NCBI GenBank assembly: GCA_964247055.1
Contig: OZ176050.1
Location: 10,044,001 to 10,108,000, forward strand
DNA length: 64,000 nt
Direction of reading: 5' to 3'
Origin: Paragordius varius
Taxonomy: Eukaryota > Animalia > Nematomorpha
Below, in pieces: positions 11,558 through 64,000 of the stretch. Position numbers and translations under genes: made by a program. Positions within the stretch are counted from its first letter, which is position 1, and each line of letters begins with the position of its first letter. The notes under the pieces were generated by a model, which saw only the letters and a program-made list of their open reading frames with translations, did no database searches and had not been told where the DNA came from.

Positions 11558-14500
11558 ATGTCTGATCTTGATTTCGTGGACGAGCTTCTTGATGAACCTT
11601 GCGAATTTAATTTACCACCGACTAAAAAAAGAACTCTGAATGACATTCGGCAGAGTCTTCTAGCAAAAACCACCAAGTTGCGTAAAAATGGGCAACACGA
11701 AGAAATACTGATCGAGGACGACGATGAAGACGACAGTAATCCACTTTGTATAATTTTAGTTTTTATTTTAACTCCTCCCGATCCAAATCCATATGAATAT
11801 ATACGGTTAGATCCCACATCTATAGAGCTGGTAAATATAGTTGAACAATTACCTTTTAATGGCAGGATTTTATGTGAAAAACAATTGATTGAAGTGTTAT
11901 GCCATTCAAGCGATTGCTTTTTTAGCACACCACGACTTTGGTATAAAAACTTTGAATTATTAAAAAAGCAACATGAGGAAGTCCTGAATAATATAACGGA
12001 TTTTAATTCCTGGGTTGTTTTACTACAATACAGCGAATGCCAGGTATAAATTATATTTTTTTACATATAGCTCCGAAATCCACAAATTATTAGTGAAAAC
12101 AAACAACAGGTTAAATTTTTATTAATAATATATAGATGGCCCTAAATTTGATGCGAAATTCATTTCATGAATTTCTCAAAAGATATCCCTATTGTTATGG
12201 ATACTGGAAAAATTATGCAGATATAGAATTACGATTTGGTGATTTGGATAATGTCTTTAAAGTAATTACTATTAATAAATTATATGCAAATCTATCCTCA
12301 AATATATCCACAAATCTTATAGTAGCTAATAACCTCCATATTTCTTGCCTTAAGTTACTTTCAAATCTCTTTAACATGTCAACTGGTTTACATAATTAGT
12401 ATAAAAACATAAAAAAACCTTTTTTAGATTTATCAGAATGCATTGCGCGCATTCCCCAACAGTGTCGATTTGTGGATTTTTTATTTGAATTTTATCATCG
12501 AACGATCTGCCGCTGAAAATTGTAACCCTATTTTACCACCCGTAATTACAGAACATCAATGGTCTAATGAACAAGTTGACAAGTAAATGTCACATAATAA
12601 TATTTTAGCTATCCAAAATAATGGTTTAATTCGGGTAAAATCACAAATGATTTTGATTATATTAACTATGACATACTTTTTAATATTTTGTAATTTACTC
12701 GAATTAAGTATATAAAAATCACGTTATTTAGCAAATCGTCTGCCATGACAACTTCGGGATTTTTAACATTCGCGATCCAAAAAAATTAATAATGTACTTT
12801 TAAAAATCATATTACACAATAATCTCAAGATTATTTATCATATTTATAATACTCTATATGTTTATTAGAAAAAAATACACTTTAAAAATGGGATCTGACT
12901 CAAATTAGATTTTTACGGTTTCCTACTATATTTAAATTTTCTCAAAATAAAGTATTACAGCATTACAATATTATCAAATCTGGCCAACAGGCTTTTAAGT
13001 TAATAGTTATCATTTTTTTCGTTATACTTGATTTGTTTGAATAAAGAAAAACGGTTTTGTAGATAATCATAGCAAATAAAGTAGGTGGGTAAAGAAAGCC
13101 CGGCCGCTGCAAAATGCTCTAAAAATTTTGGGCAAAAAGTATTTATCATTACCAAAAAAATTACTTACTTGCTAAATTGTAAAGTGGCGCATATCAAAAC
13201 GCTTTAGACTGACAATTTGGCCACACATGACAAATATTTTATGATAATGATCTGTCAGTTATGCCTTTGACGCCTTATAATTACCCATTCAATTTATAAT
13301 AACCCATTTATAATACAAATTATGTTTTAAAGTTTTAAATTAATGTGTTTAATCCCAAATTTAATATTAGCCAACTTTGTTATTTTTTCGGTATATCATC
13401 CTATTTAATTCTGTCACGCTTGATCTTTAATGAGTCATTGTATTAATTCATTTATTAAAGTAATATATGGTTACTATATTTAAGCAGAAAGATGAGAAAG
13501 AAGCATTTTAAGACTTTTTTGGTTGACTTACATCCACAGATGGATTGATTGATTCGTAGTTTTTTTTTAAAAATTTACGGCATACCGAATTAAGTATTTT
13601 CTCTACCTGGTACAAGACGTTTTAGGACATATAGTTTATGAAAATAAATTTTAAATTTATTTCACCACGATCAACAGCCACATATGTGGCAAGTATAATG
13701 AATATAATATATTCTTATTTTACATTAAAATTAGTTTGTATCAATACATTATGTGTTTTTCACTCAATACTTTAAAAATGAAAAATTAAATAAAGTTAAA
13801 AAGACGATATTTTTTTATTGCGGCATAGGATTAAAATAATTTAAAATCATTTATACATAACAACAATTGTCTTAAAGCATGTTGATCATGCTATGTTACA
13901 CAACTTAATGTAATAAAAACGGTTTTTTCCCATAACATAGAAAAAGGCAGTAGCTTTGCCATATAAATATTTTTGTTCTTACATTTATGCTGGTAATGTG
14001 GTTTGATAGTTTTTATCAAAAACTTTGACCACAGATTTTCTACGATATGTAATTTGTTGGTTCGTAATATTTATTCCATGGATTTTTTTAGCCTGTTCAA
14101 ACAAGCTGTTGGCAAAATTGGGTCTGATTTTAAATCTGAGCCATTTTGGGATTTATTCATTTCGTGGGAAATGAAGCATGGATCCATGAAAAATGTCACT
14201 AAGATATACGACGATGTCCTGCGCCGACCTATTGCCGCTTACCGCTATTTCTTTGCAAAGTTTGTCATCAATACCTATATACATCCTTAAAACCATATAA
14301 AACATGCACATTTTTTTTACTGTTTAGATTTAAGAATCATATTGAGACAAACGATCTCCATAATATTTTGGATAGTTCTGAAATAGACTCTTTCATCCGA
14401 GACATGGGCTTAAACTCTACCTACATGGTATATTTGCTTTTTGTAATTGAATGTTCTTTTTAGCTATTGCTTATCCCCTCGTGATACATTTTTTTATTTT

Positions 14501-17500
14501 GACTTTACTAGAATTATATTTTGTAGGATTTAGACGATGATCAAATTATTACGATAAGACAGAAAATTCTGGAATCTCGGCAAAGTATTGTCACAACCAC
14601 CGAAGAAGAAGTTAAACGCATCAAACCTTTTGAAGATAATGTATTTAACATGTTTTTTTATCACTTTATAAATGTCAAATTACTTTAAAATTTTTACAGT
14701 AATCTTTTATAACATTCCTTATTTAATATATGTATAGATCCGTAGACCATACTATCACATTAAGCCGTTAGAACGGTTCCAGCTAAAAAATTGGATGAAT
14801 TATTTAGATTTTATAATGACACGCATTCCTGACTACAATCAACCGGATAGTGTGGCTAAACATAGACTTCGAATTAGGGAATTATTTGAGAGGTGTCTCG
14901 TCACCTGTGCCAATTATGAAGAATTTTGGTTAAAGGTATATTTATACAATGCTTAACTTGACAAGAAAGTTTCACGTTATATAGATATATTGATAAAAAT
15001 ATAGTTGATGCCATTGAATTTATAATATTTATTTCAAGAGTTTTAATTGACATGAAAAATTAATTTTTTGATTGTTTAAAGATTTTTTTTATAACAACAC
15101 TATTTTTGCGCGATTATCCGTCAATTTAGGTGGTTACATTATTAAAAATTTCAACAAACTTATTTCTATTTTTTACTTCGAATAGTTTGCCAAGCATCTT
15201 GAAACATATGATCTTACAACTATGAGGCATGTTTTGCAAAGAGCTGCATTTATTCACCTTCCTACCAAAACCAACATTTTTACCTTTTGGGCAGCTTTGG
15301 AAGAAAAATATGGTATATTTTATCGATTAAATATTTTTGACGTTTTTTCATTAAAATTAAAATTGTGTTTTGAATAATATTTAAATTTTGGAAACATATG
15401 TAAAAAGAATCAAATTTATTATTATTTTTGGCTCTTTAAAAATCTTCAAACTTATATGCAATCTAGGAAGTTTTTAAATATATATATTCAATTTTAAATG
15501 ATTAAAACTAATAAATTAGACCATTTTTTAATAAAATAGTAGATAAGTTAATCAGTGTATGATCACTTTTTATTTTGAAAAAAAGCTTATAACTGAAGGA
15601 ATCAACTATATTTAAATGTTTTAACATGTAACATTCATTGAAATCAACATTTAGTATAACCTTTTGTTTGTTAGGGAATTATCAAACGGCCTTTTTTCTC
15701 CTGAATTTGTTGGATGCAAACGTACCAGATCTCATGCAAACAGCCATTAGTCGAATCAACCTAGTTCGCCGTTCTCCAGTTTTACAGTCCAGGCTAGCTC
15801 TTGAATTCAATCTTTTCACAACAACGAATAACACCAACACTAACCATGCAATCATAAAGAAAGAAGAACCGGTGAATAATGACAGTAATAGTGTTGTAAA
15901 CAAAAAGGATGATACTGTTTTATTAACGAATGGAGAAAATCAGGGCTATGACGCGACCGAAACTGATATAGATGGTAAAATAATGGAAAATTACAAGGAA
16001 CCTACATTATTAACAGATGATGGGGAGCCGTGTGATGTAAAACCCGATCTTTCAAGCATTGCCATTACGTACGATGCTCATTTGATTATAGAGGCTATGT
16101 ACCGGGCCCTACTGAAAAAATATGCAACAAATTTGTGTTACTATGGTTATTATGTCATACAATATGCGCGGTTCCTTGATAAAGTATTACTTTTTCGTGT
16201 TTTATGATAGAAATTTATTATTGTGTATCTTTTACAATGTTGTTGTTAAGTAATTATGAATAATGTGGCTCTATTGTATATATATAATTTACTATTTCTT
16301 AAACCAAGTATTCTATTTTTTTGCGTTCAAAAGCATATTTACTATAATTTGTAATGAAAATATTTAATTGAGTTATATAATATTTTATTTTTAGGTTAAA
16401 AACTCGCGTTTACAAGCTCAACAATTGCTTTTGGAGGCCATTGCCACTGATGCAGTATATTTTTGGATTTTATCTATCTGAAAAAATAAATCAATTTTGT
16501 AAGACATTTTATTATATTTGCCATTATAAATTTTTTGTTATAATAGAATAACGAAAAATTATACCTATTACTCATTGATCTCGAATATCAAAATGAACCA
16601 TTTAACATTGATGCGGTGATCGAATGTTTCGATTTGGCGCTCAATAGTACGTTGCCTGAAACAAGCAAAACCGCTTTTGCACAGCGAAAATATGAGTTTC
16701 TTGAAGCCGTTGATAATGATGTTATGAGGTTTTTTTAATAGTTTTTCCAAAACATTATTTTACGACTATGTTTTTGTATAAACACAATATACCTAATTAT
16801 TTATCTCACAGAATTAATCAAGCAAGGGATGAATTTACCTCAATGTTAAAAAGTTTATTGGGTGGGGAATTTGGTCCTACCTACAACAAGTAGATAATAT
16901 TTTAATTATTCTATTGACTAATAGAATCTAATCATAGTTTTTGGAAACATAATATTATAATTCCTTTGAATAATGCTATAAGAATTGAAGCATTAATTTA
17001 AAAATCATACGGCTTTATTAACGACAAAAATCTTTTATTTTTGATTTAGAAACTTGGTAAAATCCAACACCCCCTTATCACAGCCTGCATCCAATGACAC
17101 AAATGGTGATCAAAATAAAGGTGATGAAAAAAATAATACATTATTGGGTGGTGGAAGCAGTATTAGTACACACAAAATGCACTCCAACTATTATGCTAAT
17201 TATTACCAGAGTTATTTCGCTCAACTTGCCTCAAAGGTTAACATAACCAATTTTAGTTTCTAAAATATAATTATACTTCTCAATTTTGAATAAAACTATT
17301 ACAGTAAATTATACGGACAAAACGTAAAAATATAAAGACAAATATTTTTTTTCAACAACCATACTTTTTAGACCTTAATTTTTCCTCTATAAGCTATTTA
17401 ATTTAATTGTAGTATATAGAATTGAGTGTGTTAGTAATATATATATCTTTATCACACTTGAGTTATAATTAAAAAAAATCAATATTTAAAATTATCATTT

Positions 17501-17652
17501 TTTTAGAAAAAATATTTGTCTTTATATTTTTACGTTTGGTCCGTATAATTTTTTACTGTATTTTAATGTTCCATATTAATATTTAATAGGGTGCCAGCGC
17601 TTTTAAACAACCCTCTACTCATCTTGCCACGATTGTCAAGAAGCAAATTTGA
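11558..17652 (+). CDS. PRPF39: Pre-mRNA-processing factor 39 (HAT repeats, U1 snRNP-associated). About 14 exons: 11558-12043, 12136-12261, 12428-~12582, 14092-14259, 14328-~14428, 14527-14640, 14738-14935, 15186-15312, 15675-16183, 16395-16454, ~16546-16728, ~16811-16889, ~17049-17236, 17590-17652
   Basis: Spliced translation gives [100 protein letters not shown] and [10 protein letters not shown]. These are collinear with PRPF39/Prp39 as I recall it. All junctions are GT-AG and in phase. Confidence 0.93.
17302..17558. mobile_element. Tc1/mariner-like MITE in the last PRPF39 intron (257 bp)
   Basis: TA flanks on both sides. ~50-bp TIRs CAGTAAATTATACGGACAAAACGTAAAAATATAAAGACAAATATTTTTT and its reverse complement. 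Related copy at 39351-39639. Confidence 0.8.
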
Positions 17653-17825
17653 AAAATGCACTCTATTTAGATTTTACACAATCATCTTAATATATATAAA
17701 TTGAATCTTGTCAATCAATAATATACACATACTTATGACTAATAATAAATATATAAAATTTATTTCGTTTTTATTTATATGGTATAGTTTTGGCGTTTTC
17801 AATATATATACATATAGTAATAAAA

Positions 17826-20800
17826 TTAAAAATAATTTAAATAAAGGCAATGTATCACATAAACATTAACGAGTAAACTTAAAATAATGTGTTTTTTGTA
17901 ATTATATGAAGCATGCGTTGGTTTTGAGCCACCTGTCGGGCAATTTTGAGTCATTTCATCTAAAATTTAAAATAAATCATTGGTAATATAAATTAACTTT
18001 GAATTGTAACATATTCAAGTATTTTACATAGTCTTATAAGCCATATTTAAGTGGTAATTATCAAATATGTTTAAGACATCAATTTCACCATTACTTGAAT
18101 TTTAGTATTTTAATATTAATTCGCCTAGTTTAATAAACAAGTTCCTTACTAACTAATTAATTTCGTTATTATTGTTCGCATTAATATAATATTTTCCGAA
18201 TGCGTGTCATGTTGCCATTTTAATTTTTGCAATATCAGATACCTTCACTTTTTTATTTATTGTTTAATAGCTCCTCCCTGAATATGAGATGCCGTAATAA
18301 CCCCACTGTATCGTCTATACAAACATTTTCACTTTTATATTTTAAGAACACATTTTAGGTTTATCCGAACCTCAAATTTATTAAATATAAAAGGTGTGTA
18401 GTTTAAATTAAAACATGATTAACATTATATTTATTTACTAGAGTCACTTTTTTGCTTTTTTATATAATGGTTAAGACTTAATTTGTATCCTGACTTGTGA
18501 AGGCTTTAACATATGCCTGCCCAAGGCTGACAGATATGATGGAAAAATGCGTAGTTTTGGGGTTCCATCTCCGGCAATCAGTAAGAGTCTTGCGCCCTAC
18601 CTACTAAAGCTTTAATTTTTAAGTTTTTAACTTTTACACAATTTGGATATCTCTGAAGCAAACACATTTTAGTAAAAATTATTTCAGCATAATTTTTTTG
18701 TTACAATTTAAATTGGGTCAAAAAAAGATTTTTTAACATTTTTATTCCTGATATTTTTGTGTTTATTACTATAATGTTTTAATTTAAATTATACCAATAT
18801 CATTCTGGAGTTGAGGTAAATAAATTTTTTGAAAAGCACAACTTCGCATACGCGGTCCTCTTTCTACGTTCAGTGTTCTTGGGGTCATGTGTGTTGTTAA
18901 TTTCAAATAATATTTTTGATAGGCATTGTACAAAGGCCAAGGGATATCGATTGTTCTTCCAGTAGGAAACCGATTTGGATTACTATTAATATTGCAAAAA
19001 TATTTTATAGATTCTCGCATAAAATATTATAAAATTAACATCGTTGCCAATTATAAATTTTTTTGTTCCTCTATAACACGACGTCAAAATAAGGACCCTA
19101 AAATAATACAAATTTATTAATTTTAATTTATAAATTTACAATCCGCCTAAGTCTCTAGAAATATTCGTTACGGAAGGCCGTAAAGTGGTAACCGCAAAAA
19201 ATCGGAAATAAATTACTATGTTTATGGATAATTACACTAGACAACAAATTTTAACTTTTTTTAACTGCCATTCTTGTAAATTTAAAATTTATTTCATTAA
19301 AGTACATAATTAGTATATCTGAAAAGAAAATTGGTCTAGCATGGAAGGATTTTTTTATATTAGAGTTTATCGATAATTTTTAGCCCCGATTTAACATTAA
19401 ACTCGAAATTTCGAAAATTAAAAGTTTTAGATATGAAGCCATGTATTTTATATCATTAGAAAGAGCGCAAAAAACTGCATCTTTTAAATGGTAGTAAGTC
19501 ATTTAAATCAATCGGATGTAAAAGTTATTTGGATTTAAATGGTTGAAATTTTCAATCCTTAAATAAGTCAGGAATTTTCACAGACATACTAATTTGAAAT
19601 TCATATAAATTATTTTGATATAATTATTAGGGTTATATTAATTATTAATTTTAAAAAAAATGTTTGAAAAAGCTTTTGGTTTGCTTTTTTAATAAAAATT
19701 ATTATTATCATAAATATTTTACCTAGTGGATACTAAAATGCATAGTTATAACTGTAACTTAATTACATAATGGCTATAAAAGATCAAAAATACCTTAAAT
19801 TTTGTTTTTATTTTTAAAATTTCAAAATTATCAGCCTTATAAAGAAAATAAATTAATATTGATGAGATGGTAATTTTTAAAAAACAAAAAACTTAAAAAT
19901 GGTTGTTTTGAGTGACATAAAAGCAATAAAAAAATGTTTTAATCAAAAAAACTTTCTTGTGTTATCTTTTTTGGACATTCATCACCATCTAAACAAAGTT
20001 TGAGCTATTTTCATCCATTAGTTTTAAAAATATAATAATTTAAAAAAATGCTCTCGCTTCGCGCGTTTGTCGCTCTTAGTGTCCAATATTAACTGTCGAT
20101 GTAATACATATTAGTATGAATTTTATAGAGTTTTTATTACTTATTCGAATGATATATTACAAATGGGCATTACTTGTATATTTTCAAAGAAAAATATTTT
20201 TTAGTAAAATTTTGATAAAGAGGGCGCATAATCAAAAAAAATCAAATTATACAAAATTCTTCCAACGAGTTATAATTTTTATTTCAGATTTACTGTTAAA
20301 ATGATACTAAATATCAGAAAATTCAAAAAACTCGAGTGGCAGAAAAATTTGTTGTCCAGTGTTATTAAGAGAACGTTAAAAAAATATATCTCTTTTATTC
20401 TTTATTATCGCTTTTCAAATATAATTTTTTCATTAGCGTCTTTTACGAATCTATGTGTTAATAAAATGTAGAATGTTGGACGTGTTTATCTATTCAAATT
20501 TAAAAGTGAAAATTTTGCGCCGACTCTAACCGGGCTTTTTGAATTAGCTCCTCATTAAGCCCCACCTCGGGTCACTGAGGTTTTTGAAACAGAACAGACC
20601 CTAAATAACGTGTTTATTAGTAATTTAAAAATCATGTAGGCTCATTTAATTCAATAATAACATTAATACTTTTTTATGAGTCCGTTTACATCATCGCCCA
20701 CTTTTTAAATAGCCCCCTTATATTACTTGTCGCTCGGTAAAATTGAATTTTTTACACCAAGTTTACAAAATTAAATTTTTGAAGCAAAAATTTGTAGAAG

Positions 20801-22963
20801 TTATAGGACTCTAACAAATCAATAGTAGTTTTAGGTACTAGTATAGAGGCAATCCCCCAACACCTTTTTAGTTAGTGGATGGGTGAGTCCCCCCTATGTT
20901 AAATACCCACTATATAAAAATAATTTGGTGGAGCAATTTTTCGGTAATGGATATAGTTTTAGGTGTTTCTTGCAAAAGGCAAATATTTAGTGTCCATACA
21001 ATTAATTTTATCCAATAATTTTTACTTCCATTAAAGTTTGATTAACTGCTAATAATATAATCCAAGTTAATTAAAAATTTATATACCTGGTATAGGCAAA
21101 GTTGGACCAATATCTCATCATTAGCATGCTCAATTGTTTCTCTTCGGGTGTGTAATTAAGCATAGTATCATTTCTAAAGGGTTCACCAAATACGAAGGGT
21201 ATTTCATCCCCGTGCATTACACCCATCCAAACTGGCCAAGGATTTTGTGAGGACCGATGAGCAAATTGATACATGTAAACATCCATTCCCATTACGGCAT
21301 AATGACTCGCAAACTCATTAACATTACAGGTAAACCATAAATCACCTGCCATGTAATCGATGGATCGTAAAATTTTCTCCGGGTTTTCTGGTTGATCCCA
21401 TGGGCTGTAATGAAAGGCTACGCTTTGTTGGGATACCGGATCTAAATGCCAGTATATGTCCTTGGTAGCGATACTTATATCATTTGGCCTTAAATTGCTT
21501 ACATCATTACGGAGAGGTTGAAACATTTTATCCAAATAGTAGATGCTGAAAGAAGTGCCCTCATTAAGATTTGATCCAACCAACAAGGGTGCACGTTTAA
21601 ATAATCCAAGAGCCAATAACTTTCTCGGGTTAGCTATGATAAAATGTCCATCAATAACCGGAACAAATGGGAATTGCATGACATTGGTTGTAACGAATTC
21701 CCTGTCTAGTAATGTCGTATGATTAACACTCCTTAAACACTTCATAATTTCATTGGCATATACACCACTTATGTTAGTGTGTGGACATTTCAATGAATCT
21801 GCTAGCAGTGTTGTTCGATGGAGAGCCTCTTGTGGCGTAACCAAAGCCCAAGGTGATGTAGCCGAGGCACTTTGAAGGATAGCATTGTTAAAATATTCGC
21901 TAGAAACAGGCGACAAAAGTTGAAAGGCTACACTAGACGCCCCAGCCGATTCTCCCATTAAAGTAATGCGTTTTGGGTCCCCACCAAATACCTTCGCATT
22001 AGATTGCATCCATTTTATGGCAAGGAGTTGATCTAACAAACCCTGGTTTCCGGGGGCCTCTTGTGTCCCGGAATATAAAAACCCTAATGATCCAAAACGA
22101 TAATTCATGGACATAACGATAACATTCATGTGAGATGCTAAAATTTTAGCATTATATACATCTAAAGTTATCGTTCCACTGTAATAACCTCCGCCATAGA
22201 TCCATACTATAATGGGTAGATAGCTTGTAATAGGTATTGTTGATACATTTAATTGTTGATTCCTGACTCTATCAGAAAGCAATTTAGATTTTGATTTGTT
22301 CGGAACCCATAAGTTAAGATACAGGCAATCTTCCGAAATGGGTGTATTAGCGTTCCACATATTTGACCCGCGAAAGTCTCCAAACACCGTATCTAAAGTT
22401 TGAACACATGAATTTGGGGGATGTAATGCATCTAAAATCCCTTCCCAGTGTTCTATAGCTTTGGGTGCTCTGAATCTTAATTCTCCGATCGGCGGTTTAG
22501 CAAATGGTATGCCATAATAAACATCTAAACAATCGAAATCCTTTGTTGTAGTTGTAGGGTAGGTTCGCAAACCTCTAACTTTGCCTGACAATGTTTGTGT
22601 TATCACTTCATCTGTTTTTACATTATCATTGGGTTGGACTTTGTTCCCTTGTAAAAACTTACCGATATTCAGGAGGGGTGGGTGTAATGGAACCTTGTTT
22701 GCAGAAACGTTAATTAAGAAACTGCTACCCAAACTTTCCAACCCATAGATGGTTTTGATATTTTGAGAATTGGTTTGATAAAAGCTACTGCAGATAAGTA
22801 TGATGATATAAAAAATATAGGGAACTTTGAGTGAGGTAGGCTTTAAAAAACATATTTTTTCCACATATTTTAGTGTAAGTGGTGGTGGTGGTTTAATTTC
22901 TTTCTCAGATTTCGGATGTAAAAATATGGTGGGATTAGTTGCGTTTAATAAAATTTGAGGCAT
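17826..22963 (-). CDS. ace-1: Acetylcholinesterase/cholinesterase, ace-1-like, ~732 aa. Exons 22963-21087, 18982-18795, 17959-17826. Predicted GPI-anchored form
   Basis: Catalytic triad motifs GESAG, GSNLNEG and GVMHGDEI. Choline-site W (GSNMWNAN), SEDCLYLN, GGG oxyanion hole, MNYRFGSLGFL and GNQGLLDQ present. Exon 2 encodes SNPN..WPLY..GPRMRSCAF. Exon 3 encodes DEMTQNCPTGGS...IILSLLVNVYVIHCLYLNYF* (Cys, small residues, hydrophobic tail). Total 2199 nt, in frame. The ace-1 subtype call rests on resemblance to arthropod ace-1 motifs. Confidence 0.9.
18515..18605 (-). mobile_element. Probable tRNA(Lys)-derived SINE head, copy 1
   Basis: About 90-bp element shared with 26138-26231. Minus strand reads AGTAGGTAGGGCGCAAGACTCTTA..., resembling the D-arm/A-box and anticodon arm of tRNA-Lys(CTT) (CAGTCGGTAGAGCATGAGACTCTTAA). 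Confidence 0.5.
19235..20361. mobile_element. Non-autonomous CMC (CACTA/Chapaev-like) element in AChE intron 1 (1127 bp)
   Basis: TIRs CACTAGACAACAAATTTT and CACTGGACAACAAATTTT (reverse complement of the right end). 3-bp TTA duplication on both sides. No coding remnant seen. Confidence 0.7.
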
Positions 22964-24175: not shown

Positions 24176-24211
<36 letters not shown>

Positions 24212-28879: not shown

Positions 28880-31800
28880 TTACTTAGAATTAAGATTATT
28901 ATTATTGTTGATATATATAGGAGTAATTGTCGGTAGAGTTGAAAAATGTTCTTGATTTACAGGATATAATATATCTCCTGGTGATAGTTGTTTTATTTCA
29001 TTTTTATTGATATTATTATTATGATTTGAAATATTATTTAATCCATTGATCATAAGGTTAGTGGGATTATTACTATTAAAATTTGTGATATTAGGAATGA
29101 CTTTAATAATGTTGTTATTGACATTGACTTGATTTAAGTTTGGCGCAATTATATTTGTCGGATAAAGAGGTATAACAGTTGGTCTAATGGGTTGAGATAC
29201 TATTTTGGTCGCAATAGGACGGTTAACAAAAGATGTTCTGTTCGGATTATGATTAACTATATTATTTGGCACATTATAATTTACAAGTGGTATAATTTGT
29301 GGACGATTTTGGATGGGTAAAATGGTAGAATTTTGAGTCAATTGAGTATTAATGCGTGTAGTATCTATAAATATGGGTTATAAAGATTACAAGTTCTATA
29401 AATTTTGAGATAAGATATTTATTTAATGTCTTGTTAGTCAAATTAATACTATAGAAGCATCATTAAAGATTAAATATTCATCAAATTTTTTTGAGAAGTA
29501 TATAAAGAGCAGTTCTAATATTCTGATTATTTTTATTGTCATTTGTTAATGAAAGTAAAAGTCAATACAAACAATAATTTTAAAACATTAAATTATTAAA
29601 AAAAACAATTATATATAATCGATAATAAAATTAAAAAAGATACCGGCAGTTGTTACGTGGCTTTGCACAACATTACTCGTCATAAATTTAAGATTTTGCA
29701 ATGAATTTTTAGTTAACACCATCACCGATGATGATGGAATGCTAGACTGGAGATTATTGTGAGGAAATAAATTATTAAAGAAATTGGTATGTGATAAATT
29801 TTGAGGTATGAGATTTGATACGGGTTTCGTGGTAGTGTGTTGTTTCCCACTTTTAGTGTTATTATTACGATAATAACCGTCTTGAAAAAGATTGGCAGAT
29901 AGGAGGGATGTTGCGTCCATCGTTTTGTTCGTTTTAGGGGCACCGTGATCATTTAACTCAAGCGTTGAGGTAAGGAGATGATTAAATGCTGATTCTTTGT
30001 GAAAAGGAATAATAAAATAAAAATTAATTTTGTGTAAAAACAAAATCGACATAAAGTATCTTGCAGGAAAATTTTTTAAAACATTAATCAAAATTCATTT
30101 TCTATATTGAAATTACATTAACTATTAAATAGCTTGTTCCACCCAAATGCTACCAACACATATTCTATGAGGTAAAAAAACAAAACCCATTTATTTACAA
30201 TGACACTTTTAGTTTTTTATTGTGCTGAGATAAAAATATATACCCTTGGTAAATTGGCCTTCTCTACTTTTGACAAGGTTAGTAATGTTGGTGGTCTTTG
30301 TTTCTCCTGTTTTAGATTGCACATTATGTAAAGGGAGAGTGGGATAAGAGCTCCGTTTCTTATTTGTACCCGATTCTCTTGTATGTTTGCGAATATGTTT
30401 CCGTCGTGGTTTATAACCTTCAAAATCATATTCGAATTCACTGTCAAAACTTTCATTCTGATCATAATAATTATTGTCATTATCAGAGCCACCACCATCA
30501 TCATTTTTATGCGGAGAGCCACTATTCACGTAACGTTGAGATCTACGTACTTCTCCATTCTGTAATGCATTATTATGATTAGGTTCAGTTCCCCCATCGT
30601 CATCAGAAACAATACCTGAAGTTGTATATCTTTGAGGTCTTTTACGGGCCCTGGCTGAACGCTGGAGAAATAAGATGTTTGAGGAACTATCATTATTCCA
30701 CCACTTTGAATCAGTGCTTTTCTTTGACGCATTTAAGTCATTATATTGGGATGATGATGTATTTAACAGCTTATTTTGGTTATTTTGAGCGTCTGATGAA
30801 TTTAATTCAAGCTTTTTGTCATCTAATGATTGTGTGATGGTATTGTGAATTAACGCACCAATTTGAGATTGGCTTAAAGTATCAGTATTGTTAGATGATA
30901 TAATGGGGGACAACGTTTCGGTAGTGTTTGTATAAGGTGCTGTTGATAAGGAAGCATCCATAATACTTTGCACCTGATAAGGGTTATGATTTGGACTTTT
31001 GGTTATAGAAACATTGTTGTTGGATTCACTAAGAAAAGAAACCAAAATACATTTGAAATGGAAAAATGATTTAACTTTAAAAAGTCAAACAAAAATGGTT
31101 TTGAATTTCATTACAAACTAATTATGATGTTAAAACTAATAGTATATCAAGTAAATATAATTACATGGCTTCTGATGGGCGCGGCTCATCGATTTCATGA
31201 GATGGATCTCTTTTAACAGTTTTGTGAGACGATGCTATGTTGAATAATAGAATAAATTCAAAACGATAAAATAATAATTTAAATATATTAATTCCTAACA
31301 AAAAAATAAATAAAATATTTAGGAATGTTGCTTTGCTATTATTCTGTACAAACATTTTGTGATTATACCATACATTGGATAAACAAAAAAACAAGACTAG
31401 GCTATATAGATATATCTATATAACTTATCTAATTTTACTTACCGATCCTGAATAAAAGTTCTATGGTGCTTTTACCTTCTCAAATGTGATTTGATATGTA
31501 TCGATTGTTACATATTTTCTATCTATTTATAATGACCGTTTCAAAAACTTTGAAATGTTCGAATAATCACATTTTTATAGATCTAGAGAAAGTTTTTGAT
31601 ACCATACCCAGACATTTTATTAAATCAATTAAGATATCAAAAAATAGAAGAAGCTGCGTTAAAACACCATTGATTATATAACCAAGTCTATTCACACGAT
31701 TCAAAAAGCTTATCCAATGGTACTGCTGTTCATAAAAACGGATTTATAAAGCAATGTATCAAAAACAAAAGTAATGATTGGAGATAAAAACATAACTCAC

Positions 31801-34800
31801 CGAGGTAAAAATGCCATTTTATGCAAATCTTGGCTCCACAAAAAGTGCCCAAACTTCAAAAGATAATCAATTGATAGCAATAATATTATATGCCAAAGCT
31901 GCACATTTAAAAAATCAAACATAACTTAAGAAAGTTGACTTACATACGCCAGGGACACTCGGGTTATCACAAAAACACTGAAATAATGACTTCAAACAAA
32001 CGAAAACACAATGCTAAAATATATGGGGCTTAACCCTACCCTAAGTAAATTAAAACCAATAACATCTTTAATCAGTTAATTTATTTATTTCTTAATATAG
32101 CGCCGACGTATTGGGAGTTTGATGTATGAATGATTGACCCTACTTTGGCCACAAAAACAGATTTAGTAAAGACTCATCTGCTAAAGTTCACGATATGAAT
32201 TCCTGTTTCAAGCGAAAAGGTAGGCCTAAAACAACTATTAAGGCAGTTTAATCATTGTGATACACATTAATGCCCATTATATATGGGAACTAAAAACAAT
32301 TGCAATGGACATACAACTTTCTATTTGTATTAAAAAACATAGAGTTACCAGACAATTTTATTGAAGTCAAATAAATCCGAGTAAATATAATGAAAAATAT
32401 TTTGATATAATCCAATACCTAAAACCTATTCAGATCTAAAACAAAAATGCCCAAATTTATAAACATACTAGTATGATCCTTAATTGCTTTGTCAATCATT
32501 TGATCAAATGCATCGAATTGATAATCGATCGGTTTACGAGTCCTTTGTACCCGTGGTGGATTGTGAAACAAATTATCAATGTTAGTTTGTTGGTTATTAA
32601 AAATTTTGGATCCCATATCAAACAATTCTTCGAACGTTGGTTTACGCTTGATTAATAATTAACATATAAAATAGAAAACTAATGTTATATAAAATATGGT
32701 TTACAGCTAGAGAATTGATTTTCCATTTTTATAAAAAAAACCGCTTTGCACTTCCCATTTCAAAAATTATTTTGAGAAAATATTTGTACTATTTGTTGAA
32801 CTTACATGTAATCTACCATTTAAATGCGAATAAACATACAAAAAGCAAAATTATAATGGCCATTTTTATCTTAAACTTTAAGTTTTAAACCAGGTTAAAA
32901 TTGTATTAAAAATCTTAAAAAGATAATAGAAAAAAAGGGTTTTAAATTGAAAATCCTAATAAAAATTTTTTTAGCTCTCAAAATAGGTAATAGTTTTGGT
33001 TCTAATATCCCTGATAATTTTATCAAAAAGCGTAAAAAGCTTATATAATTATAAAATACATCATCCAAAATATTGGTGAGTTGTATTCCGGCAGATCGCA
33101 GCCTTTCTTGTTTTCGGGCGTTAGCTTTCCGTTTTTCTTCAACGACTGTTAAAATATCCAATTTCTCTTTAAGGGACTTTATAAGAGCTTCCTACAATAT
33201 AATTAAAGAAATAAAATTAATTTCACGCTTATAATAAATTAAAGGGAATGTTATAAAAGTATATATAAATTTTAATTTTTTCTTACATGGGGACATATTA
33301 GTGAAATATAACCAGCACACGACTTAGACATATAAATAAAAAGGTATTGTCTTATGATTACATTCTTATAAAATAATTCAATTTGATAGTAACTTAATAA
33401 ATGTTGTTAATATATTCCTTTATTACACTGTGCGCAAAAAAGGGGGTTAAAAATAAACGAACATGAGTTTTATCTAGAATAATAAGAAATCCCTTGGAAA
33501 ATGAGACCCCAAATATTTAGGGGCAAAAATGCGCTCGAAAATGGAAATCTTCCATTTTTGACTAGAAATAGATTTTTGTCCATATTTTTTAAACTTATTG
33601 AGCAAACACGATAAAACTTTTATATAATATATAAAATATATTCTTAAGAAATTATTTTAGAGTATCAAATTTTTTAATTCCACAAAATAAAAATTCGTAA
33701 ATTTTACGACATTGGCGAAATATGTTAAAAAAATTATTTGCAAAAACTTCATATTGTTATTATTATTTAAGTTCTTGACTTATATTAAACATACCAAAGA
33801 GTTGGTATGCCTAATAAAGGCTATGTATCTTTTTAAGTCCCTCAAAAATTTGTATTTTTTGGAATATTTTCGTTATTTTAATTTTATTTTCCTCACATGC
33901 TTTTCTCATTGTTTCATAATAACATAAAGCCGCAATTTTCAAATGCGACAAAAAAACCAGCAAAATTCCAAAATTATAAAATTTCCCTTTACATTACTTT
34001 GGAAAAATATTTATATACTATATAATCTATAGATAATAAATTTAATTAAACTTTTGATATGCAGAAGGCAGCATCGGAAATATAAATAGCTTTTTTTGCA
34101 ATCAAATAGTTACCTGCTATATAGCTTATTGAGAAAATTCTATTTGTAAAGAATAATATTAATGGCAAATGAAGTTTCGCGTATATTTTCTTCATATAAT
34201 TTTAGTTACAAAATAGAATTTTCCTTGCACCAAAATTATTCTGACATTTGTAAATAATCTACTTCCAGAAACTCTATTGCTCAAATTATAATCAAACAAT
34301 TATAACAATTATATATTGAAAAACTGATAATAAATGGATTTATTTTTATTCGATAGAATTTTTAGCATTCTTTTACAATAAGAATATTTAATTAGGTTTC
34401 TACAAAATTTTAAAATAAAAATGTTCCGGTCTTATCAAGATAGTGTCAAATACAAAGTTCGCTTGCAAAAATTGCTCCTGCAACATCTCTTCAAACACTC
34501 CCAACCATTCGATATACAATGAATCTGATTATGTTGTTTGATTCAAATATCTAGGTCACATCATTACTGCCAACGGTGGCGTAACTGAGGCTATCAAAGA
34601 TAGTATAATCACACAAACATGGAAAAGCTACCATGCATTCAAACATACTATAAATAATAAATATATTAAGCTAGAAACCAAAGGACAACTCTACTGTACA
34701 GTAATAAGACCGGTGTGTTGACATACGCCTCAGAGTGCTGGCCAATGATGGCATGTAAAATATTAAATACAATCATATTTGCTCATAATCTTATACTATA

Positions 34801-37800
34801 TAATTATAATATTACATTTGACCCTTACGTTATATTAAATATCCCAAACATCGAACAAAGTTTAAAGATAAACCGCTTAGGATATGCGGGCCACATCCAC
34901 CTGCGTCCACAGGAACACCCCTTACAATACATGCTTGACCGCCAAAAAATTATAGGGGCCGACCCTTTGAAGATTGGTCAAAAACGATAAATGTAGATAT
35001 GATGATTTGCAACTTAAACATTAATGATGCGCTGCACTTCTTAAAGAAAAAAATACGACAAGCTTCAAATCTGAAGATAGTCTAACTCAACAACAACACT
35101 TCAATACATATAAGAATTTCAACTTTTTTATACACAATGAATACATTATTCAGACGTAAAATAAATACAATAGTATTCACCAATCATATGGATACTATTG
35201 AAACTATTATAGTTTTTTTCTATTTGTTTGAGCGTTTGATGGAACCCTTCTCCATCCTGGTCTATAGCCCTCCACCGGGGGAATTTATCAAGATGTTTAT
35301 CCACAAGATGTAGTTTTATGGACATATTAACACCGAAAAATAAACAAATAACATTAAATGTTCAAGGAAAGTTTTTAAAAATCAAATATTTGCCTAGGAC
35401 TTTAAAGGAGTCCGCTACTTCTGCTCCTAGAGAGACATAATCTATGGATTTAAATTTCCCAAAGATTCTCTGCTGAAAGTTTTAAATGCATTAAAGCTCT
35501 TTTTTCAACAGGATTCATTATGTTGTAAAAGGCGTCCGATTCAAATAAACTTTCTATTTGAGGTCCAGTTAAATATCCTGCCGACAATTTGATTGGATTG
35601 ATTTTAAATATATTTAAATAAAATAAATATGCTGGTCCTTCCTTATTCATATTAATTATAAAGGTTCGGTCTAGACCTAATTTTATATGCAAGGGAGGAA
35701 TAATCAGGTTCTCCATATGCAGCGGTTTGAAAGGCGGGTACCCTACGTACGCCTGTCTTTTTTGCCTCTTTAAATCCAGAGATAAAGGAAACCATTATAA
35801 TCCACACTATTTATACCATCCTGGAACGGATGATGTCATAGCTCTTTAACATTTAATGTTATTTATTTATTTTTAGGTGCTAATATATCCATAAAACTGC
35901 ATCTTGTGGATAAACATCTTGATAAATTCCCACGGTGGAGGGCTACAGACCAGGATGGAGAACGGTTCCATCAAACACTCAAACATATAGAAAAAAACTA
36001 TAATAGTTCCAATAGTATTCATATGATTGGTGAATACTATTGGAATCATTTTATGTCTGAATAATGTATTTATTGTGTATAAAATTGAAATTCTTATACG
36101 AATTTGAAGTGGTGTTGTTGGGTTAGACTATCTTCAGATTTGAAGCTTGTCGTATTTTTTTCTACAAGGATTGCGATCGAGCGCATCATTAATGTTTAAG
36201 TTCGACAATGTCATAAAAATTACGAATTTCTATTTTTGTGGAATTAAAAAAATTTGATACTTTAAAATATTTTATGTACTTTTCTTAAGAATATATTAGG
36301 TTTTATATGATATATAAAAGTTTTATCGTGTTTTCTCAATAAGTTTAGGGGCGCATTTTTGCCCCTAAATTGATATTTTCCAAGATATTTCTTATTATTC
36401 TAAATAAAACTCATGTTCGTTTATTTTTTTATGCGCACTGTGTTAGTATATAAAATGTACATTTTCGATATCATGTAAGAATCAAATAGTAATTACAAAG
36501 TTACACATTATAATCTTTTTTATATGTATGGCTACAAATTTATAACATACATGATCACACACAGGGCATTGCCAATCAAAATTATCTTCCGTGAAAATGT
36601 ATCGATGTGCTGGTAATGGTAAACACTGGGGATGCCAATATAAGAAACAAGTTCCACACCTCTGAAGCTAGATATTTTATCAAATATGGTAATGAATGGT
36701 ATTTCCTTTAAAAAAATTTAAAGTTTTCCAAAAATATATTACCGTTTTTGGTTTATTTTTGTCACAACTTCGACACTTTTTGGGAAATTTGAATTCTTTG
36801 TTGGGAATTTTATCTATATAAAATAAAATATAGTTCATATATTAAAAAGAAGTATATATGAATAAATAATTTAGGATACAAAGAACACTTAATGTTTAGC
36901 CACTTACACCTCAAATTCACTCTTGAAAACTTAAAATTAACCTTAGACAATTTAATTTCACCCTAATTCAAATGCACCTCTGAACGTTTCAAATTCATAA
37001 ATTGTGTTTTTAGGCTAATTTAACTCAACATTAATATAAAAGAAGTCTTTATGGCATAATCTATTATTTTTTCTGAATGATATTAAGTTTTATAGGTAAT
37101 TTTTGATATTCAAAAACAATTTATTTTAGGATGAATTTAAAATGTTCAAGGGGGAATTCAATTGTTTAGGGGTAAATTAGAAGTGTTGTAATGGTATATA
37201 AATAACTCTCCATGGACATACCTTGTGTCTTAGCCATCTTATTTGGAGAAGTTAAACTTTTTTGTGGCTTTATGGCTTCCTTGCTTTTAACTTTGGTTGA
37301 ACTACGTAGTTGTCGTTTAGGAATTGCAAACATGTCAAAATTATCATAAAAATTATCATCTTTATTATTTGCATTTTCGAGATTATCATTTGTTACGGTA
37401 AGACAGGTCATATTGTCTGGATTTTCTAATATTGGTTGTTCTTTTAACAAACTAGTATTTTGGTTTTCATTAATTTCAGAATTGAGATTTAAATTATTAT
37501 TATTATCTACATCTTTTACATTTTCATTGACGCCCTCTGGAACATGTGAGTCAGGAGAAATAATATCTTCTGCCGTATCATTTTCTTTTAATGTTAAATA
37601 CTCATTTTCTGATTCTAAAGTGCCGTTTGAATGAGCGTTTATATTTGGTTCTATTGTCATATCATCTAAAAAAATATTAATTGTTATAATAATTTTCCAG
37701 TCAAAAGAATCAAATCAAATATCTTAATAAATAGTATCCCCCTGTAATCAACCTCTATTCACATTCATTTTAATATTACCAAAAAATTCAATAAAGGAAG

Positions 37801-40129: not shown

Positions 40130-40165
<36 letters not shown>

Positions 40166-41734
40166 AATACAACATCATGCCCGCACTTATATTTAATGGC
40201 CAACGGTTTCTGTGGTAATTATATCCATATTTTTCCGCATAAATAAACTTCTTTCCGCTGCACAACTTGAAGCGGGCATAAAAATAATTCTCCTGACAAG
40301 TGAAGACGTATTGGTAATCAGTAAATGTGCCAATAAACTGCCATATTTCTGATACTCTTAATTGTATCTGTCTCAATTATAATTTTCCATGTAAAAAAAT
40401 ATATTCACAGTTCGTAAAATAATTGCCAAAACTTGAATTTTTGAATAATTGGAATATTGCCATTTAAATGTCGAAGAATTTTGAAAGTTTATCGGTACAT
40501 TTACCGGTTATCAACACTTGTCTCTACTAGTCAAAAGTATTTTTATACCCGCAAAGAGTGCAGCGAGATTCTAGCATAAATATGTACACCGTTTATATGT
40601 ATATCGTTGAAACAAATTAATGGCCAACTAGTAGTAATGATGAAAATATTGCATGATTGTTTGAATTTATAATTTTAATAAATTTTGTTAAATTTATAGG
40701 TAAAGCATAAAAAAGTATTTCGTTACATTAAATTCCATATTCAGCATTTTTTTCTTTCACTATTAATAATTTAAATGGGTTGTATTAAATTTTTTCTCAA
40801 CAGTCTTAGCTTTTAGCTGTGATTTAAAACTTTGTTTAAAGTCTTATGTATAAATCTAGGGAAGATCATTAATTGTAGAAATTCAAAAAAATTGTTTTGG
40901 TATTAATAATAATTTTTAAAATACATTTTTTATTTAACAGGGGTCAAAATTACAACCCTAGTAAATAACTATAAAGGTATTATTTAATATTAAATGCAAT
41001 AAATCAAATAACTTGGATATGGTGGTAATTCTATTTAATAAAAGGTGTATAAAATATATATTTTATGAACCAATATCTCTGATTGGGATGCATAAAAATT
41101 GTGTAATTATGATTAGATAAAAGATGTAACGCCTGTTGTAATTATAACCTGCATATGTGAGTCCAATCGTCATAATCTGCAGATTCTTTGTATAAATTAA
41201 AGTTTTCTTCTCTGTCATATTGATACCAATAAAAAGATCCATCAAAGGATACACCAATGGGTAAATCTCGTTCCGCCTTAGATATAAGAATGTCAGATTT
41301 AAAAGTCCAATTTTTTTCATATTGCAATTCTAACATACCCTAAAAAATTCAATTTGAACATTACTCTCAAAATTTGGACTTTGGCAAATGGAGATAACTT
41401 ATCATAAGAATCATTGTACAATAATTCATAATCATCTTGTGACAATATTTCAAAATCCTAAAATATTATTTGTCTCTACTTTTAAAGAAAGTGCCAATAA
41501 TTGTTGCCATTTTTCTAGTTTTATTGCTTTTCTAACTTTTTTGAGCAATAAAATAAATAAGGGTTTGAGGCCTAATATTTTAATCAACAATTCCATACTT
41601 AATGAAGAAGATTCAATCGTTCTTTGAAGTTCAGGCATTGAGATGTAAGGTATATCCAGCATGTGACCATATTTCTCCAAAAATGAACAAACAACTGCAA
41701 AACTACTATCATTTAAAATTGATTGACTGTCCAT
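28880..41734 (-). CDS. RSF1: Remodeling and spacing factor 1-like (DDT-like and WHIM/WSD N-terminus, PHD finger, Asn-rich C-terminus). About 14 exons, including 41734-41599, 41571-41480, 41457-41365, 41339-41149, ~38697-38539, ~37667-37220, two PHD exons (~36810-36550), ~33190-33060, ~32650-32472, ~31230-31165, ~31027-30243, ~29996-29644, ~29366-28880
   Basis: FAVVCSFLEKYGHMLDIP, EKWQQLL, YDKLSPFAKVQILRGMLELQYEKNWTFK and LPIGVSFDGSFYWYQYD are collinear with the RSF1 N-terminus. PHD reads CRSC..CGTC..HPQC..WQCPVCDH. It is followed by KQERLRSAGIQLTNIL and RTRKPIDYQFDAFDQMIDKAI, both conserved RSF1 blocks. The 3' end is least certain. Confidence 0.87.
31560..31800 (+). mobile_element. Degenerate non-LTR retrotransposon RT fragment in an RSF1 intron
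   Basis: Translates as HIFIDLEKVFDTIPR, matching the RT motif F(I/V)DLEKAFD. The frame is broken downstream. Confidence 0.5.
33426..36442. mobile_element. Rearranged, defective Chapaev-like (CMC superfamily) DNA transposon, ~3.0 kb, inside an RSF1 intron
   Basis: Termini CACTGTGCGCA and TGCGCACTGTG with TTA on both sides. Long inverted subterminal arms (~33426-33715 versus ~36200-36442). Transposase remnants: GLKGGYPTYACLFCLF (+, ~35722), IIPPLHIKLGL..GPQIE (-, 35450-35716) and IKLHLVDKHLDKFP..DQDGERFHQ..MIGEYYW (both strands). The Chapaev assignment is from recalled motifs and the TWA TSD. Confidence 0.75.
34530..34990 (+). mobile_element. Non-LTR (RTE-like) LINE fragment nested in the Chapaev-like element
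   Basis: Frameshifted translation FKYLGHIITANG...LYCTVIRPV/LTYASECW...NRLGYAGHI matches the C-terminal RT/thumb region of RTE-type LINEs (FKYLG, LLYGSETW, RLRWAGH). Confidence 0.7.
39351..39639. mobile_element. Tc1/mariner-like MITE, second copy of the 17302 family, in RSF1 intron 4
   Basis: TA|CAGTAAAAATTGAAATTATACGGACAAACG at the left and TGTCTTTTATATTTTTACGTATTATCCATATAATTTCAGCTTTTACTG at the right. Shared internal CAACCATACTTTTT. Confidence 0.65.
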
Positions 41735-42472: not shown

Positions 42473-42506
<34 letters not shown>

Positions 42507-51100: not shown

Positions 51101-51202
51101 CCTTATACTATTACCAATTTATCAATATCGAATTCAATAAAAAAAATGTTTAAATCCAATACTGTTTATATAAATTATATTTATCTATCTATCTTTACCT
51201 GT

Positions 51203-51233
<31 letters not shown>

Positions 51234-51431
51234 GTGAAAAACATCAATCTTATTTCATTTACTTTTAAAGGTGGTGCGAAAATATTTATACAATTATTTT
51301 TAATGATAATTATTAGTTATTTTTTTTTGATTTATTACCTTGAATTCAAAATTAAACTCATATCTTTTTAAAGCAAAGCAATATTTTATTGATAATTTTT
51401 ATCTATCAGAGTTGGAATTAAAAATCAAATA

Positions 51432-54400
51432 ATGAATCCAACATCACAACTTTTACGTAAATCAAGTGCAGTTTTGGTTGAAAAACCAAGCAATTCTTCG
51501 AAATCCTTGCAAGAAGAACCAAACGACAATAATAGTTTTAATAGAAATAATAATAATGACAAGTACCGACCCACAAACGGATCATATGAAAATGAAATGT
51601 TTCATAATCTCTTAGCTTCCATGGGATCCCAATTCCGACAAATGATTCAAAACTTATCATCAACTAATGGACATGCGGCAAACATTGATACCGTTAATAA
51701 AAACGGCCAAATATCTGATACGATTGAAAAATGTTCCAACAACAATTCAATGCTAGGTGAAGGGACGACTGATATGAATAAAATTTTTGAATTCATTAAG
51801 AATGGCATTCCACTTTCCCAGTCGTTTCATGCTAATGGTATTAACAAGAGCGATGGAATTACAGAAAATCCGGAAGATATGACTGATCATTCAAAAGAAG
51901 AAAATGAAAGTCCAGATTACGATGATTTTGATGCAGGTTAGCAAAGAAATTATTAAAAAAACACATTGATCTCATTTTTTAGTTAATATCCTAGCAAAAC
52001 TAAAATTTTGCAAATAAAATATTTTTATAATAGAAAATGGGATGGATTTCTTTGATCATCACAATGGGCACCAACCATACAAAAAACAAAGGAGAAGCAG
52101 AACGGCTTTTAGCACGGAACAATTGTCGGCTTTGGAAAAAACTTTTCAAAAAACACATTACCCTGATATATTGATACGCGAACGATTAGCATTATGTACT
52201 AACTTACCTGAAGCTAGAATACAGGTAGTTAAATAATCTATGCCTTAATTTCTTCTTCTGAGTTATGCCCTTTATGTAATTATTTTATTCAGTTTAAGTA
52301 ATGATATAGTTTTTTGTTTTTTACCTTATTTAAAATATTTTATTTAATCAATTGGCATTTTTAGTTAATTGGTTAAAAACGCTTTCCTTGCTTGCCTAAA
52401 TATAACTTTTCATCGTTAACTAAAACATATATATGCGCTAAAATTGAATTAGCAATATATATATAAAAAAAAGTAACCAATTTAATTGGTTTATTCGTAT
52501 CAAAATTTCCATATTTACACAAGTGTGGTATGGTATATTAATATTATTAAATTTTGATAGATTTCGATACTTTTTCTTGTTTAAAAAGAGTTGTTAAATG
52601 CGAAAATGATGTATAAGGATGATAATTGAAATCAATAAATAATTGATTTATAAGAAAATGATATGCAAACCCCATTAATTAACCCCTTAAGTGAATAATG
52701 TGCCCAAAGTTATATGATTTTATATTTGAGTTAGGTCGGCAATGTTCAAACTCATTAGTTGTTTTATTTTTAATAATTTCATAATAAAACCATTTATAAA
52801 ATTCACAATGCTTTTATTATAACTAACAATTAAAAATTTATATGTTTTATTCTATCTTGCCAAAATTAATCAATAAAAGGTGTAATATATCCATTCAATA
52901 TAACTAATTAATCAATTATAAAACTTAAAACGCATTTAGAGAATATGAGTATTTACGTGTATTGGCAGACAAAAATTTGATTTATCTTAACAAAATATTA
53001 CTCATATATCTGATTGTCTGGTACAGGCAAAATGTATTGATTAAAAAGGATAAAATTAATGATATAGATAATATTATTTACAAAAATAAATTCATCTACA
53101 TAGTAAGGCTGAAAAATAGTCAATTTCGATTATGAAGTTGGGCAGAGTGAAACATGTAACATAAAATAACACTCTTGGTATTAATTATACAGTCATGGTT
53201 TAATTATAAACGTTTTGTATCGGATTACCGATAAAATAGTTAAAATACCGATCACGAAGGATACTTTGACAGAAATTAACTTTTATTAAATTCTATAAAC
53301 CAGGGATCGGTGAAGTTGAATCTGTAGAGCCGAAATAAGGTCTTACCAACATTGATGGACCAATATTTAATGATCGAAAAAAATTTTTATCGTGGATTTT
53401 TACAAAATTTGTTTAACTTATTCTGGCAGAAAAACCTAAAAATACATAGCTTTTATATAAATAATACTATGGTCATCAAATTTGTTTTAATGAAACAATG
53501 TCATATAATAATAATATATATATTTTACTAGGTATGGTTTAAAAACCGACGTGCCAAGTTTCGCAAAAAACAAAAATATAATCGATCAAACGGAGGTGGA
53601 ACCCAAAATACCGGTGTTATAATAGCTAAATCTTTAAACAATGATCAACTAATGCACAAGGAAATAAAAAATAATGGTAGTCATTTAAAATTTGATTCAA
53701 AATTTTGTGGTGCTCCCCCTAATGGCAGCACAGAGAAGGCTTTAAATGGCGAAGAAAATTTTGTATACAATGATGAAACAGATGACAAAGCTTACGACAA
53801 AGCTTATGCCATGGATCAAACGTTGCAAAATATCATAAAAAAAGAGGTTAAACAATTCAATCGATCGGAAACGGGGAAGAAATTATACCCGACGGAAAAG
53901 AATACTGCTACACAAGGAAATGGAAACGTTGCTGTTGAAAGATTTATTACCAACAATATTCCTAAATCTTTTGTACCGGGTGCTGTAAATCAAGCTCCAA
54001 ATATTATGAGTAAAATGAAGACAAGTTCCATCCCATTTGATGATGACAAACAGTATGAACCAACTATTAATGCCCATGATGCAGACAAATATAATATTGG
54101 AAAACAAACGGATGATACAGAAGACAGCCAAACCAATAATGGTATTTTAAGCAATGAATACATACAAAAAGAGAAAATGAAATATGACATTGGTAGGAAC
54201 TTACATGATAATGTCATGAACAGATATATGGCCTATTACAGCAACATGTATAATTATCAAAAGCAAAACGAACCCGACATCCGTGGTGGCACTCAAGGTA
54301 GTTTAGGTGAAGGAATAAATGTAACTTCTTCTGATCGAAACAATAAAATTAACTTGAATCATCCCATAACCATGTTACCTACCAACATGTTGAAAGAAGA

Positions 54401-55073
54401 ACAACATTTGATGTTAAAAAACCATAATTTTTACAATTTTCCAATGATGACACCGTCATTGTTTAATATACCAATGGGGTCAACTTCTTACCCCAACTTA
54501 CCAGCACCGCCAGCCCCATCAGAGATTATGAATATGTATGGGAGCTTTTATTTGGAATATTTGCATAATCTTTATGCTCGTTTTTATGGGAATAACGCCT
54601 ATTTCGCTGACTATCCATTAAATAATGGTGCAAGTATGCTTGCTAATTCAACTCATACACCAGCAAGTGTTAATGGCCCGAGCATCGTTTCAGTAGTTTC
54701 AACAACAATGCATCAAAATGAAACGGGCAAAAGCGATAATCTAACCATTAACTCGACAACGTGTCAATCGAATCCAAGCCGACAAACTATCATAAAAAGT
54801 GCTAAAAACCAAGAAGTTAATCCAGTCATATCAAATGCGACAGAAATAAATAAAATTGGTTATGCTTGGAGTAAGCCAGAGAATGTAAATAATACTATGA
54901 TAACAAAGGGCCATTTAGCTAAAAGTATTGTAAAAAAATATTTTAACCAAAACATGTATAACCATACCAGCAATCATCATCAACATTCCTCAGTCATAAA
55001 ATCTCACTTAACAAAGCCATCTAAATTTAGTGCCTTGAAACATCTCAGCTTATCTGGTCAAGAAAAAAATTGA
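51432..55073 (+). CDS. DMBX1: PRD-class K50 homeobox protein of the Dmbx family, at least 745 aa. Exons 51432 (or 51410)-51936, 52034-52224, 53532-55073. A further upstream exon is possible
   Basis: Spliced homeodomain [46 protein letters not shown]|[15 protein letters not shown] nearly matches the Dmbx1 homeodomain as I recall it. The intron lies at the typical PRD-class 46/47 position. Total 2238 nt, in frame. Confidence 0.9.
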
Positions 55074-55761: not shown

Positions 55762-63851
<8,090 letters not shown>

Positions 63852-64000
63852 ATCCTGCTGATTGTCAAACCTAGGAGAGAATAATAAGTGTTATAAACAT
63901 GACAAAAAATATCCCGATTAACTGAGGGAATATTTATTAGGGTTTTGGATGTTTAGAGTAGGAAATATAGCAAATTTTACCCAAAAAAATTAAATCATAC

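Follow-up and report, generated by a model that had tools for sequence, protein, structure and literature searches.

In Opisthorchis felineus and other Platyhelminthes, intron lengths peak at about 37 and 90 bp and again at 3 kb, microintrons being those below 75 bp; these microintrons are clustered, lie preferentially near the transcription start and have tentatively been ascribed to intron definition (Ershov et al. 2019, PMC6530080). In Schistosoma mansoni, the first introns of sgtp2 and sgtp3 measure 31-41 bp, and the introns of their 3' parts are large (PMC4653847). A survey of 51 animal genomes detected introns of less than 30 bp in two groups only, the myxobolid myxozoans and Dicyema (Hadjez et al. 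2026, PMC13644364). Here we analyse a stretch of 64,000 nucleotides (nt) from the hairworm Paragordius varius (Nematomorpha; contig OZ176050.1, positions 10,044,001 to 10,108,000), called the window below and numbered from its first letter, in which the LONP1 gene and an RSF1-like gene carry, near their 5' ends, four segments of 22-26 nt that we read as putative mini-introns.

The layout resembles that of the flatworm microintrons: a short class stands beside kilobase introns in the same genes, and its members are adjacent and near the gene start. It differs in length, the mode being about 37 bp there against 22-26 nt here, and in phylum, Platyhelminthes as opposed to Nematomorpha; moreover flatworms show a 5' preference, whereas in the window, on a small sample, the short class seems to be strictly confined to the start. 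An earlier note on this DNA had framed the pattern as unprecedented, which is too strong, since flatworm microintrons are clustered near the transcription start (PMC6530080). A 5' microintron layout is already known in kind; what is new here is a length below 30 nt and the occurrence in Nematomorpha.

Myxobolidae and Dicyema are animals that likewise have GT-AG introns as short as 20-30 nt, at conserved positions (PMC13644364), and there, as here, an A-rich stretch precedes the 3' AG by a few bases. In those animals, however, the short introns are genome-wide, with medians of 22-27 bp in compact genomes, whereas in the window they occur at gene starts only, in a repeat-rich genome with introns of up to 3.4 kb. 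Ciliates are alike in intron length (about 25 nt in Paramecium, 15-16 nt in Stentor) but have uniformly tiny introns and no positional rule. In Paramecium, introns whose length is not a multiple of three are favoured, retention of such an intron breaking the frame. The four segments analysed here are of the same kind, which is partly a detection bias, and we call them obligatory in the sense that their length is not a multiple of three and that their removal is needed for the reading frame. Among hairworms, the published Gordionus genome (26.9% G+C, 64% repeats, BUSCO completeness 71.6%; preprint) was described with no discussion of introns, and a search of the hairworm genome literature returned no statement on intron sizes.

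Putative mini-introns of LONP1 and the RSF1-like gene

Gene models were rebuilt for LONP1, the RSF1-like gene and PRPF39. The LONP1 model was guided by a full-length homologue, frog LONP1 (P0003), and the other two by chaining of open frames and by the coordinates of Pfam profiles; a blind scan for GT...AG segments joining open frames was too noisy for use. The four obligatory mini-introns listed in the earlier note were all found again at their positions, with GT...AG ends, lengths that are not multiples of three and a frame that is restored by their removal.

LONP1 runs on the reverse strand from its ATG to its stop over 56420-63851, and the spliced model aligned to P0003 has 17 introns. Intron 1 (63547-63572, 26 nt, phase 0) follows the residues '...LE', and intron 2 (63433-63457, 25 nt, phase 2) splits the seventh codon after the motif F(M/L)KK; both run from GT to AG, both are obligatory, and they enclose exon 2 (63458-63546, 89 nt). 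The first ordinary intron is intron 3 (62799-63265, 467 nt). The spliced product of 950 amino acids is collinear with P0003, with 74% identity over 641 residues, and the alignment is gap-free over both mini-intron junctions.

The earlier note had proposed a comparison with orthologous introns of relatives, and the LONP1 loci of two other animals (L001 and L002, neither of them demonstrably a hairworm) hold introns of 603-2564 nt at these sites. At the position of intron 1 there are 2564 nt in L001 and 646 nt in L002, at that of intron 2 there are 681 and 603 nt, codon and phase being identical in each case, and exon 2 measures 89 nt in all three loci. Given these long introns in L001 and L002, the LONP1 introns of 26 and 25 nt are, as judged from sequence comparison, ancestral introns that shrank.

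Four public runs from three samples were used to see whether both segments are part of the DNA. X1, X3 and X4 represent two samples under one species label, X5 is filed under a different organism label, and all four are DNA: read depth stays even across introns, and contigs span every one of these. The read contigs were checked for the LONP1 pair only. Contigs of all four runs traverse both mini-introns, with no joint that skips the 25 or the 26 nt, and the X5 contig spans intron 2 with zero differences. Both segments are kept in all four runs, and therefore they reflect neither an assembly error, which the earlier note had named as one way in which its reading could fail, nor a DNA form that lacks them. 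Runs of that species label whose material is presumably RNA contained no match to the short words sampled from the locus.

Two further observations concern this gene. Over 58001-63900 the second sample (X3/X4) differs from the window by many substitutions and small indels, most contigs being 95-99% alike, and X5 carries the same DNA at low depth. The LONP1 introns contain (TA)n microsatellites at 61918-61972 and 62342-62401, where assembler contigs break.

The RSF1-like gene (28883-41734, reverse strand) has two mini-introns as its first sure ones and continues with introns of 75-3359 nt. The name RSF1, taken from the earlier note, is tentative: Pfam recognised only half of a PHD finger. The first mini-intron (41458-41479, 22 nt) connects an open frame of 116 codons with one of 46, and the second (41340-41364, 25 nt) links the same 46 codons to a frame of 65; both are obligatory and run from GT to AG. 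The three open frames abut, lie in three different frames and are joined exactly by these segments, in DNA with 27% G+C, in which chance would give about one stop per 12 codons. Both mini-introns are predictions from the logic of the reading frames alone. A homologue search with the N-terminal frame gave no match, and exon 4 gave only noise in the protein atlas.

Intron 4 of this gene (38696-41148, about 2453 nt) is its first ordinary one, and is followed by introns of 875, 408, 75 and 3359 nt and by five gaps of at least 136 nt each, which makes about 10 introns, of 75-3359 nt, besides the mini pair. The 75-nt intron splits the PHD finger, whose second half lies at 36545-36667 on the reverse strand. 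The 3359-nt intron contains an inverted-repeat element of about 1.1 kb (35034-36174) with inverted terminal arms of 241 and 71 nt that are 92-93% complementary; a Pfam search of the intronic reading frames, those of the element included, found no transposase.

Intron size and position along the genes

Within the window there are two intron size classes, and the short class is confined to the 5' ends of genes. Distances are counted from the ATG along the coding sequence (CDS), and the CDS positions of the RSF1-like gene count its 27-nt candidate intron, described below, as coding. On this scale the mini-introns lie at 279 and 368 in LONP1 and at 255 and 347 in the RSF1-like gene, all within 369 nt of the ATG, and the next introns follow at CDS position 535 in LONP1 (467 nt), about 539 in the RSF1-like gene (2453 nt) and 486 in PRPF39 (92 nt). 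After its two mini-introns LONP1 has introns of 467, 100, 304, 259, 460, 419 and 504 nt, followed from the 10th to the 17th by 278, 293, 86, 77, 184, 569, 400 and 107 nt, so that these 15 span 77-569 nt.

About 40 other introns were delimited in the window, the shortest of 68 nt, and no sure intron falls between 29 and 67 nt. Introns below 30 nt are thus 4-7 of about 45, namely the four obligatory ones and three candidates, and a genome-wide class of ultra-short introns was rejected on this count. If positions were random, both mini-introns would occupy the first two slots with a chance of 1/136 in LONP1 (17 introns) and of 1/66 in the RSF1-like gene (12 introns), that is jointly about 1e-4. 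They are adjacent in each gene, as introns 1 and 2 in LONP1 and as the 22- and 25-nt pair in the RSF1-like gene, where the 27-nt candidate lies just upstream. Mini and long introns have similar 5' and 3' splice-site hexamers (GTA/GTT ... TAG/AAG). The gap of 29-67 nt and the ordinary minimum of 68 nt, both claimed in the earlier note, are borne out by the rebuilt models, and so is the succession of a short class at the 5' end and a long one downstream, in LONP1 and the RSF1-like gene; PRPF39 has no sure intron below 68 nt.

PRPF39 (11558-17263, forward strand) is a complete open frame with 12 sure introns of 68-1509 nt, in order 92, 166, 1509, 68, 84, 97, 250, 362, 211, 92, 83 and 160 nt; the 68-nt one (14260-14327, forward strand) is the smallest ordinary intron. 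The Pfam matches to HAT_PRP39_N and HAT_PRP39_C are collinear from exon to exon. The first sure intron (12044-12135, 92 nt) is crossed by HAT_PRP39_N with no gap, exon 1 ending at profile position 26-27 and exon 2 resuming at 28-30. For this reason a division of the same stretch into a 27-nt intron, a 39-nt micro-exon and a 26-nt intron was rejected. The 39-nt segment is free of stops and would add 13 residues that Pfam does not support, and may belong to a minor isoform. Farther downstream, a 66-nt intron followed by a 62-nt exon was likewise discarded in favour of a single 362-nt intron (15313-15674), the Pfam profile stopping at '...EEKYG'.

GT...AG ends are common to the four obligatory segments and the three candidates. 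The candidates are a 24-nt segment of PRPF39 (11736-11759, forward strand) and a 27-nt segment of the RSF1-like gene (41572-41598, reverse strand), both in frame and free of stops, and a 28-nt segment upstream of the LONP1 ATG, in the 5' untranslated region (UTR), with a pyrimidine-rich 3' end (63871-63898, reverse strand). They had been put forward beside the obligatory ones, but they add no support, chance look-alikes being common: 17.1 kb of coding exon contain 13 strings of the form GT[A/T]...TAG with a length of 20-30 nt and at least 72% A+T (about 0.8 per kb). At this rate the 1.5 kb concerned should hold about one such string by chance, and the three candidates were not counted. One such string of 22 nt (22138-22159, reverse strand) lies about 800 nt into the conserved exon of an acetylcholinesterase (AChE)-like gene, where splicing would break the frame; it must stay unspliced, and therefore a GT...TAG string alone is not sufficient.

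Other genes of the window

The AChE-like gene, on the reverse strand, has a first coding exon of 1.9 kb (21074-22963, 630 residues) and a further exon at about 18796-19017. Its best match, at 67% identity over this first exon, is a protein of Gordionus sp. m RMFG-2023, and the matches that come next, in insects, reach 49%; by this measure the window belongs to a relative of Gordionus (Nematomorpha) and not to a flatworm. The first intron measures about 2 kb here as opposed to about 300 nt in Gordionus (L003), a locus that is AT-rich (29% G+C) and showed no synteny with the window around this gene.

In the coding 5' part of a paired-type homeobox gene (51432-55070, forward strand) no mini-introns were seen. 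An intron of 1305 nt (about 52227-53531) interrupts its homeodomain after position 46 of the profile; candidate introns of 48 and 60 nt before the homeobox exon at 53532 were spurious.

A large gene at 1154-6010 (reverse strand) has a low-complexity exon of 1326 codons and an upstream exon of 236 codons, separated by an intron of 85 nt (5233-5317), for which a 25-nt intron at 5279-5303 was dropped. This gene has no Pfam match, and its 5' end may face that of PRPF39 in a head-to-head arrangement near 11.3 kb.

Origin and possible meaning of the short introns

Our preferred explanation, to which we give a probability of roughly 0.55, is that the 22-26-nt segments are GT-AG spliceosomal introns which shrank from ancestral ones and which are short only near the cap or promoter, where splicing would tolerate them. 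Ordinary ancestral introns would have shrunk to near the physical minimum, and this shrinkage would be confined to about the first 0.4 kb past the start codon, while introns farther downstream would keep at least 68 nt and could hold transposon-like insertions. For introns this short, intron definition, that is pairing of the splice sites across the intron, might be possible only as long as the nascent RNA remains near the cap and an early-elongating polymerase. A deletion that takes an intron below about 65 nt would then persist only near the promoter, and the ordinary minimum would apply downstream.

Several points weigh against this explanation. The locus is covered by DNA runs only, and for this reason we infer the splicing of the mini-introns. 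Distances were taken from the ATG and not from the transcription start. Obligatory mini-introns occur in only two genes of the window, and a possible 133-nt intron in the PRPF39 5' UTR (11409-11541) would be an ordinary intron near a promoter. A 22-nt GT...TAG look-alike in exon 2 of the RSF1-like gene (41515-41536, reverse strand), whose length is not a multiple of three, lies inside the 5' zone and must stay unspliced, and therefore position is not the sole determinant. Finally, effects of the cap-binding complex are documented mainly for the first intron, and here two or three mini-introns stand in a row.

The segments could be something other than spliceosomal introns, such as assembly errors, frame breaks of pseudogenes, sites of ribosomal frameshift or bypass, or somatically eliminated DNA. 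The coverage by DNA alone leaves room for this, but we hold it to be very improbable: the four runs traverse the LONP1 segments with no skipping joint, these segments occupy ancestral intron positions, all four segments end in GT...AG and not in TA, and both genes otherwise keep long intact frames where stops are expected about every 12 codons. Internal eliminated sequences of the ciliate type were rejected on the same ends and on the lack, in the four runs, of a DNA form free of the LONP1 pair. It is also improbable, if somewhat less so, that the positional rule is an artefact of a small sample or of detection, mini-introns occurring anywhere in genes and being noticed only in conserved N-terminal domains or when they break the frame. 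The two-gene basis is compatible with such an artefact, and frame analysis would miss any mini-intron that keeps the frame and contains no stop. LONP1, however, is conserved throughout, and its conserved exons show no insertions of 7-10 residues relative to P0003; the gaps between exons measure at least 77 nt after LONP1 intron 2, and at least 68 nt downstream in PRPF39 and the RSF1-like gene.

A more serious competitor, though one that we consider doubtful, accepts the mini-introns as real and ascribes their 5' bias to evolution only: promoter-proximal DNA would be compact, through selection against insertions near promoters, a deletion bias or more effective selection, while distal introns take up transposons, and the spliceosome could remove about 25 nt anywhere. 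The insertions found in distal introns, such as the inverted-repeat element of the RSF1-like gene, agree with it; so do the hexamers, in which no separate signal class is visible, and the long orthologous introns of other animals, which indicate lineage-specific shrinkage. A gradient, however, predicts graded sizes, whereas the range of 29-67 nt is empty and intron size jumps, over about 170-190 nt of CDS, from 25 nt to 467 nt in LONP1 and to 2453 nt in the RSF1-like gene. Moreover, many distal introns measure 68-107 nt and none is below 68 nt, which suggests a hard lower bound that holds everywhere except near the gene start. We favour a positional limit on splicing for three reasons: the size switch is abrupt, distal introns are never below 68 nt and the layout of flatworms is the same. 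Only tentatively would we extend this to animals at large, with a minimum intron length that depends on the distance from the promoter or cap, hairworms and flatworms having evolved independently, or retained, a promoter-proximal mode of splicing that can remove introns of about 22-40 nt, such introns being rejected downstream.

If the mini-introns were confirmed by RNA, Nematomorpha would join the animal lineages that have introns below 30 nt, and would be the first of them with a repeat-rich genome. A sharp restriction to gene starts, common to flatworms, would make the question of the minimum intron length testable in terms of proximity to the cap or promoter. In that case, software for gene prediction or alignment that allows no intron below 30-40 nt would split many hairworm genes at their 5' ends or cut those ends off, and such truncated models could inflate the estimates of gene loss in Nematomorpha.

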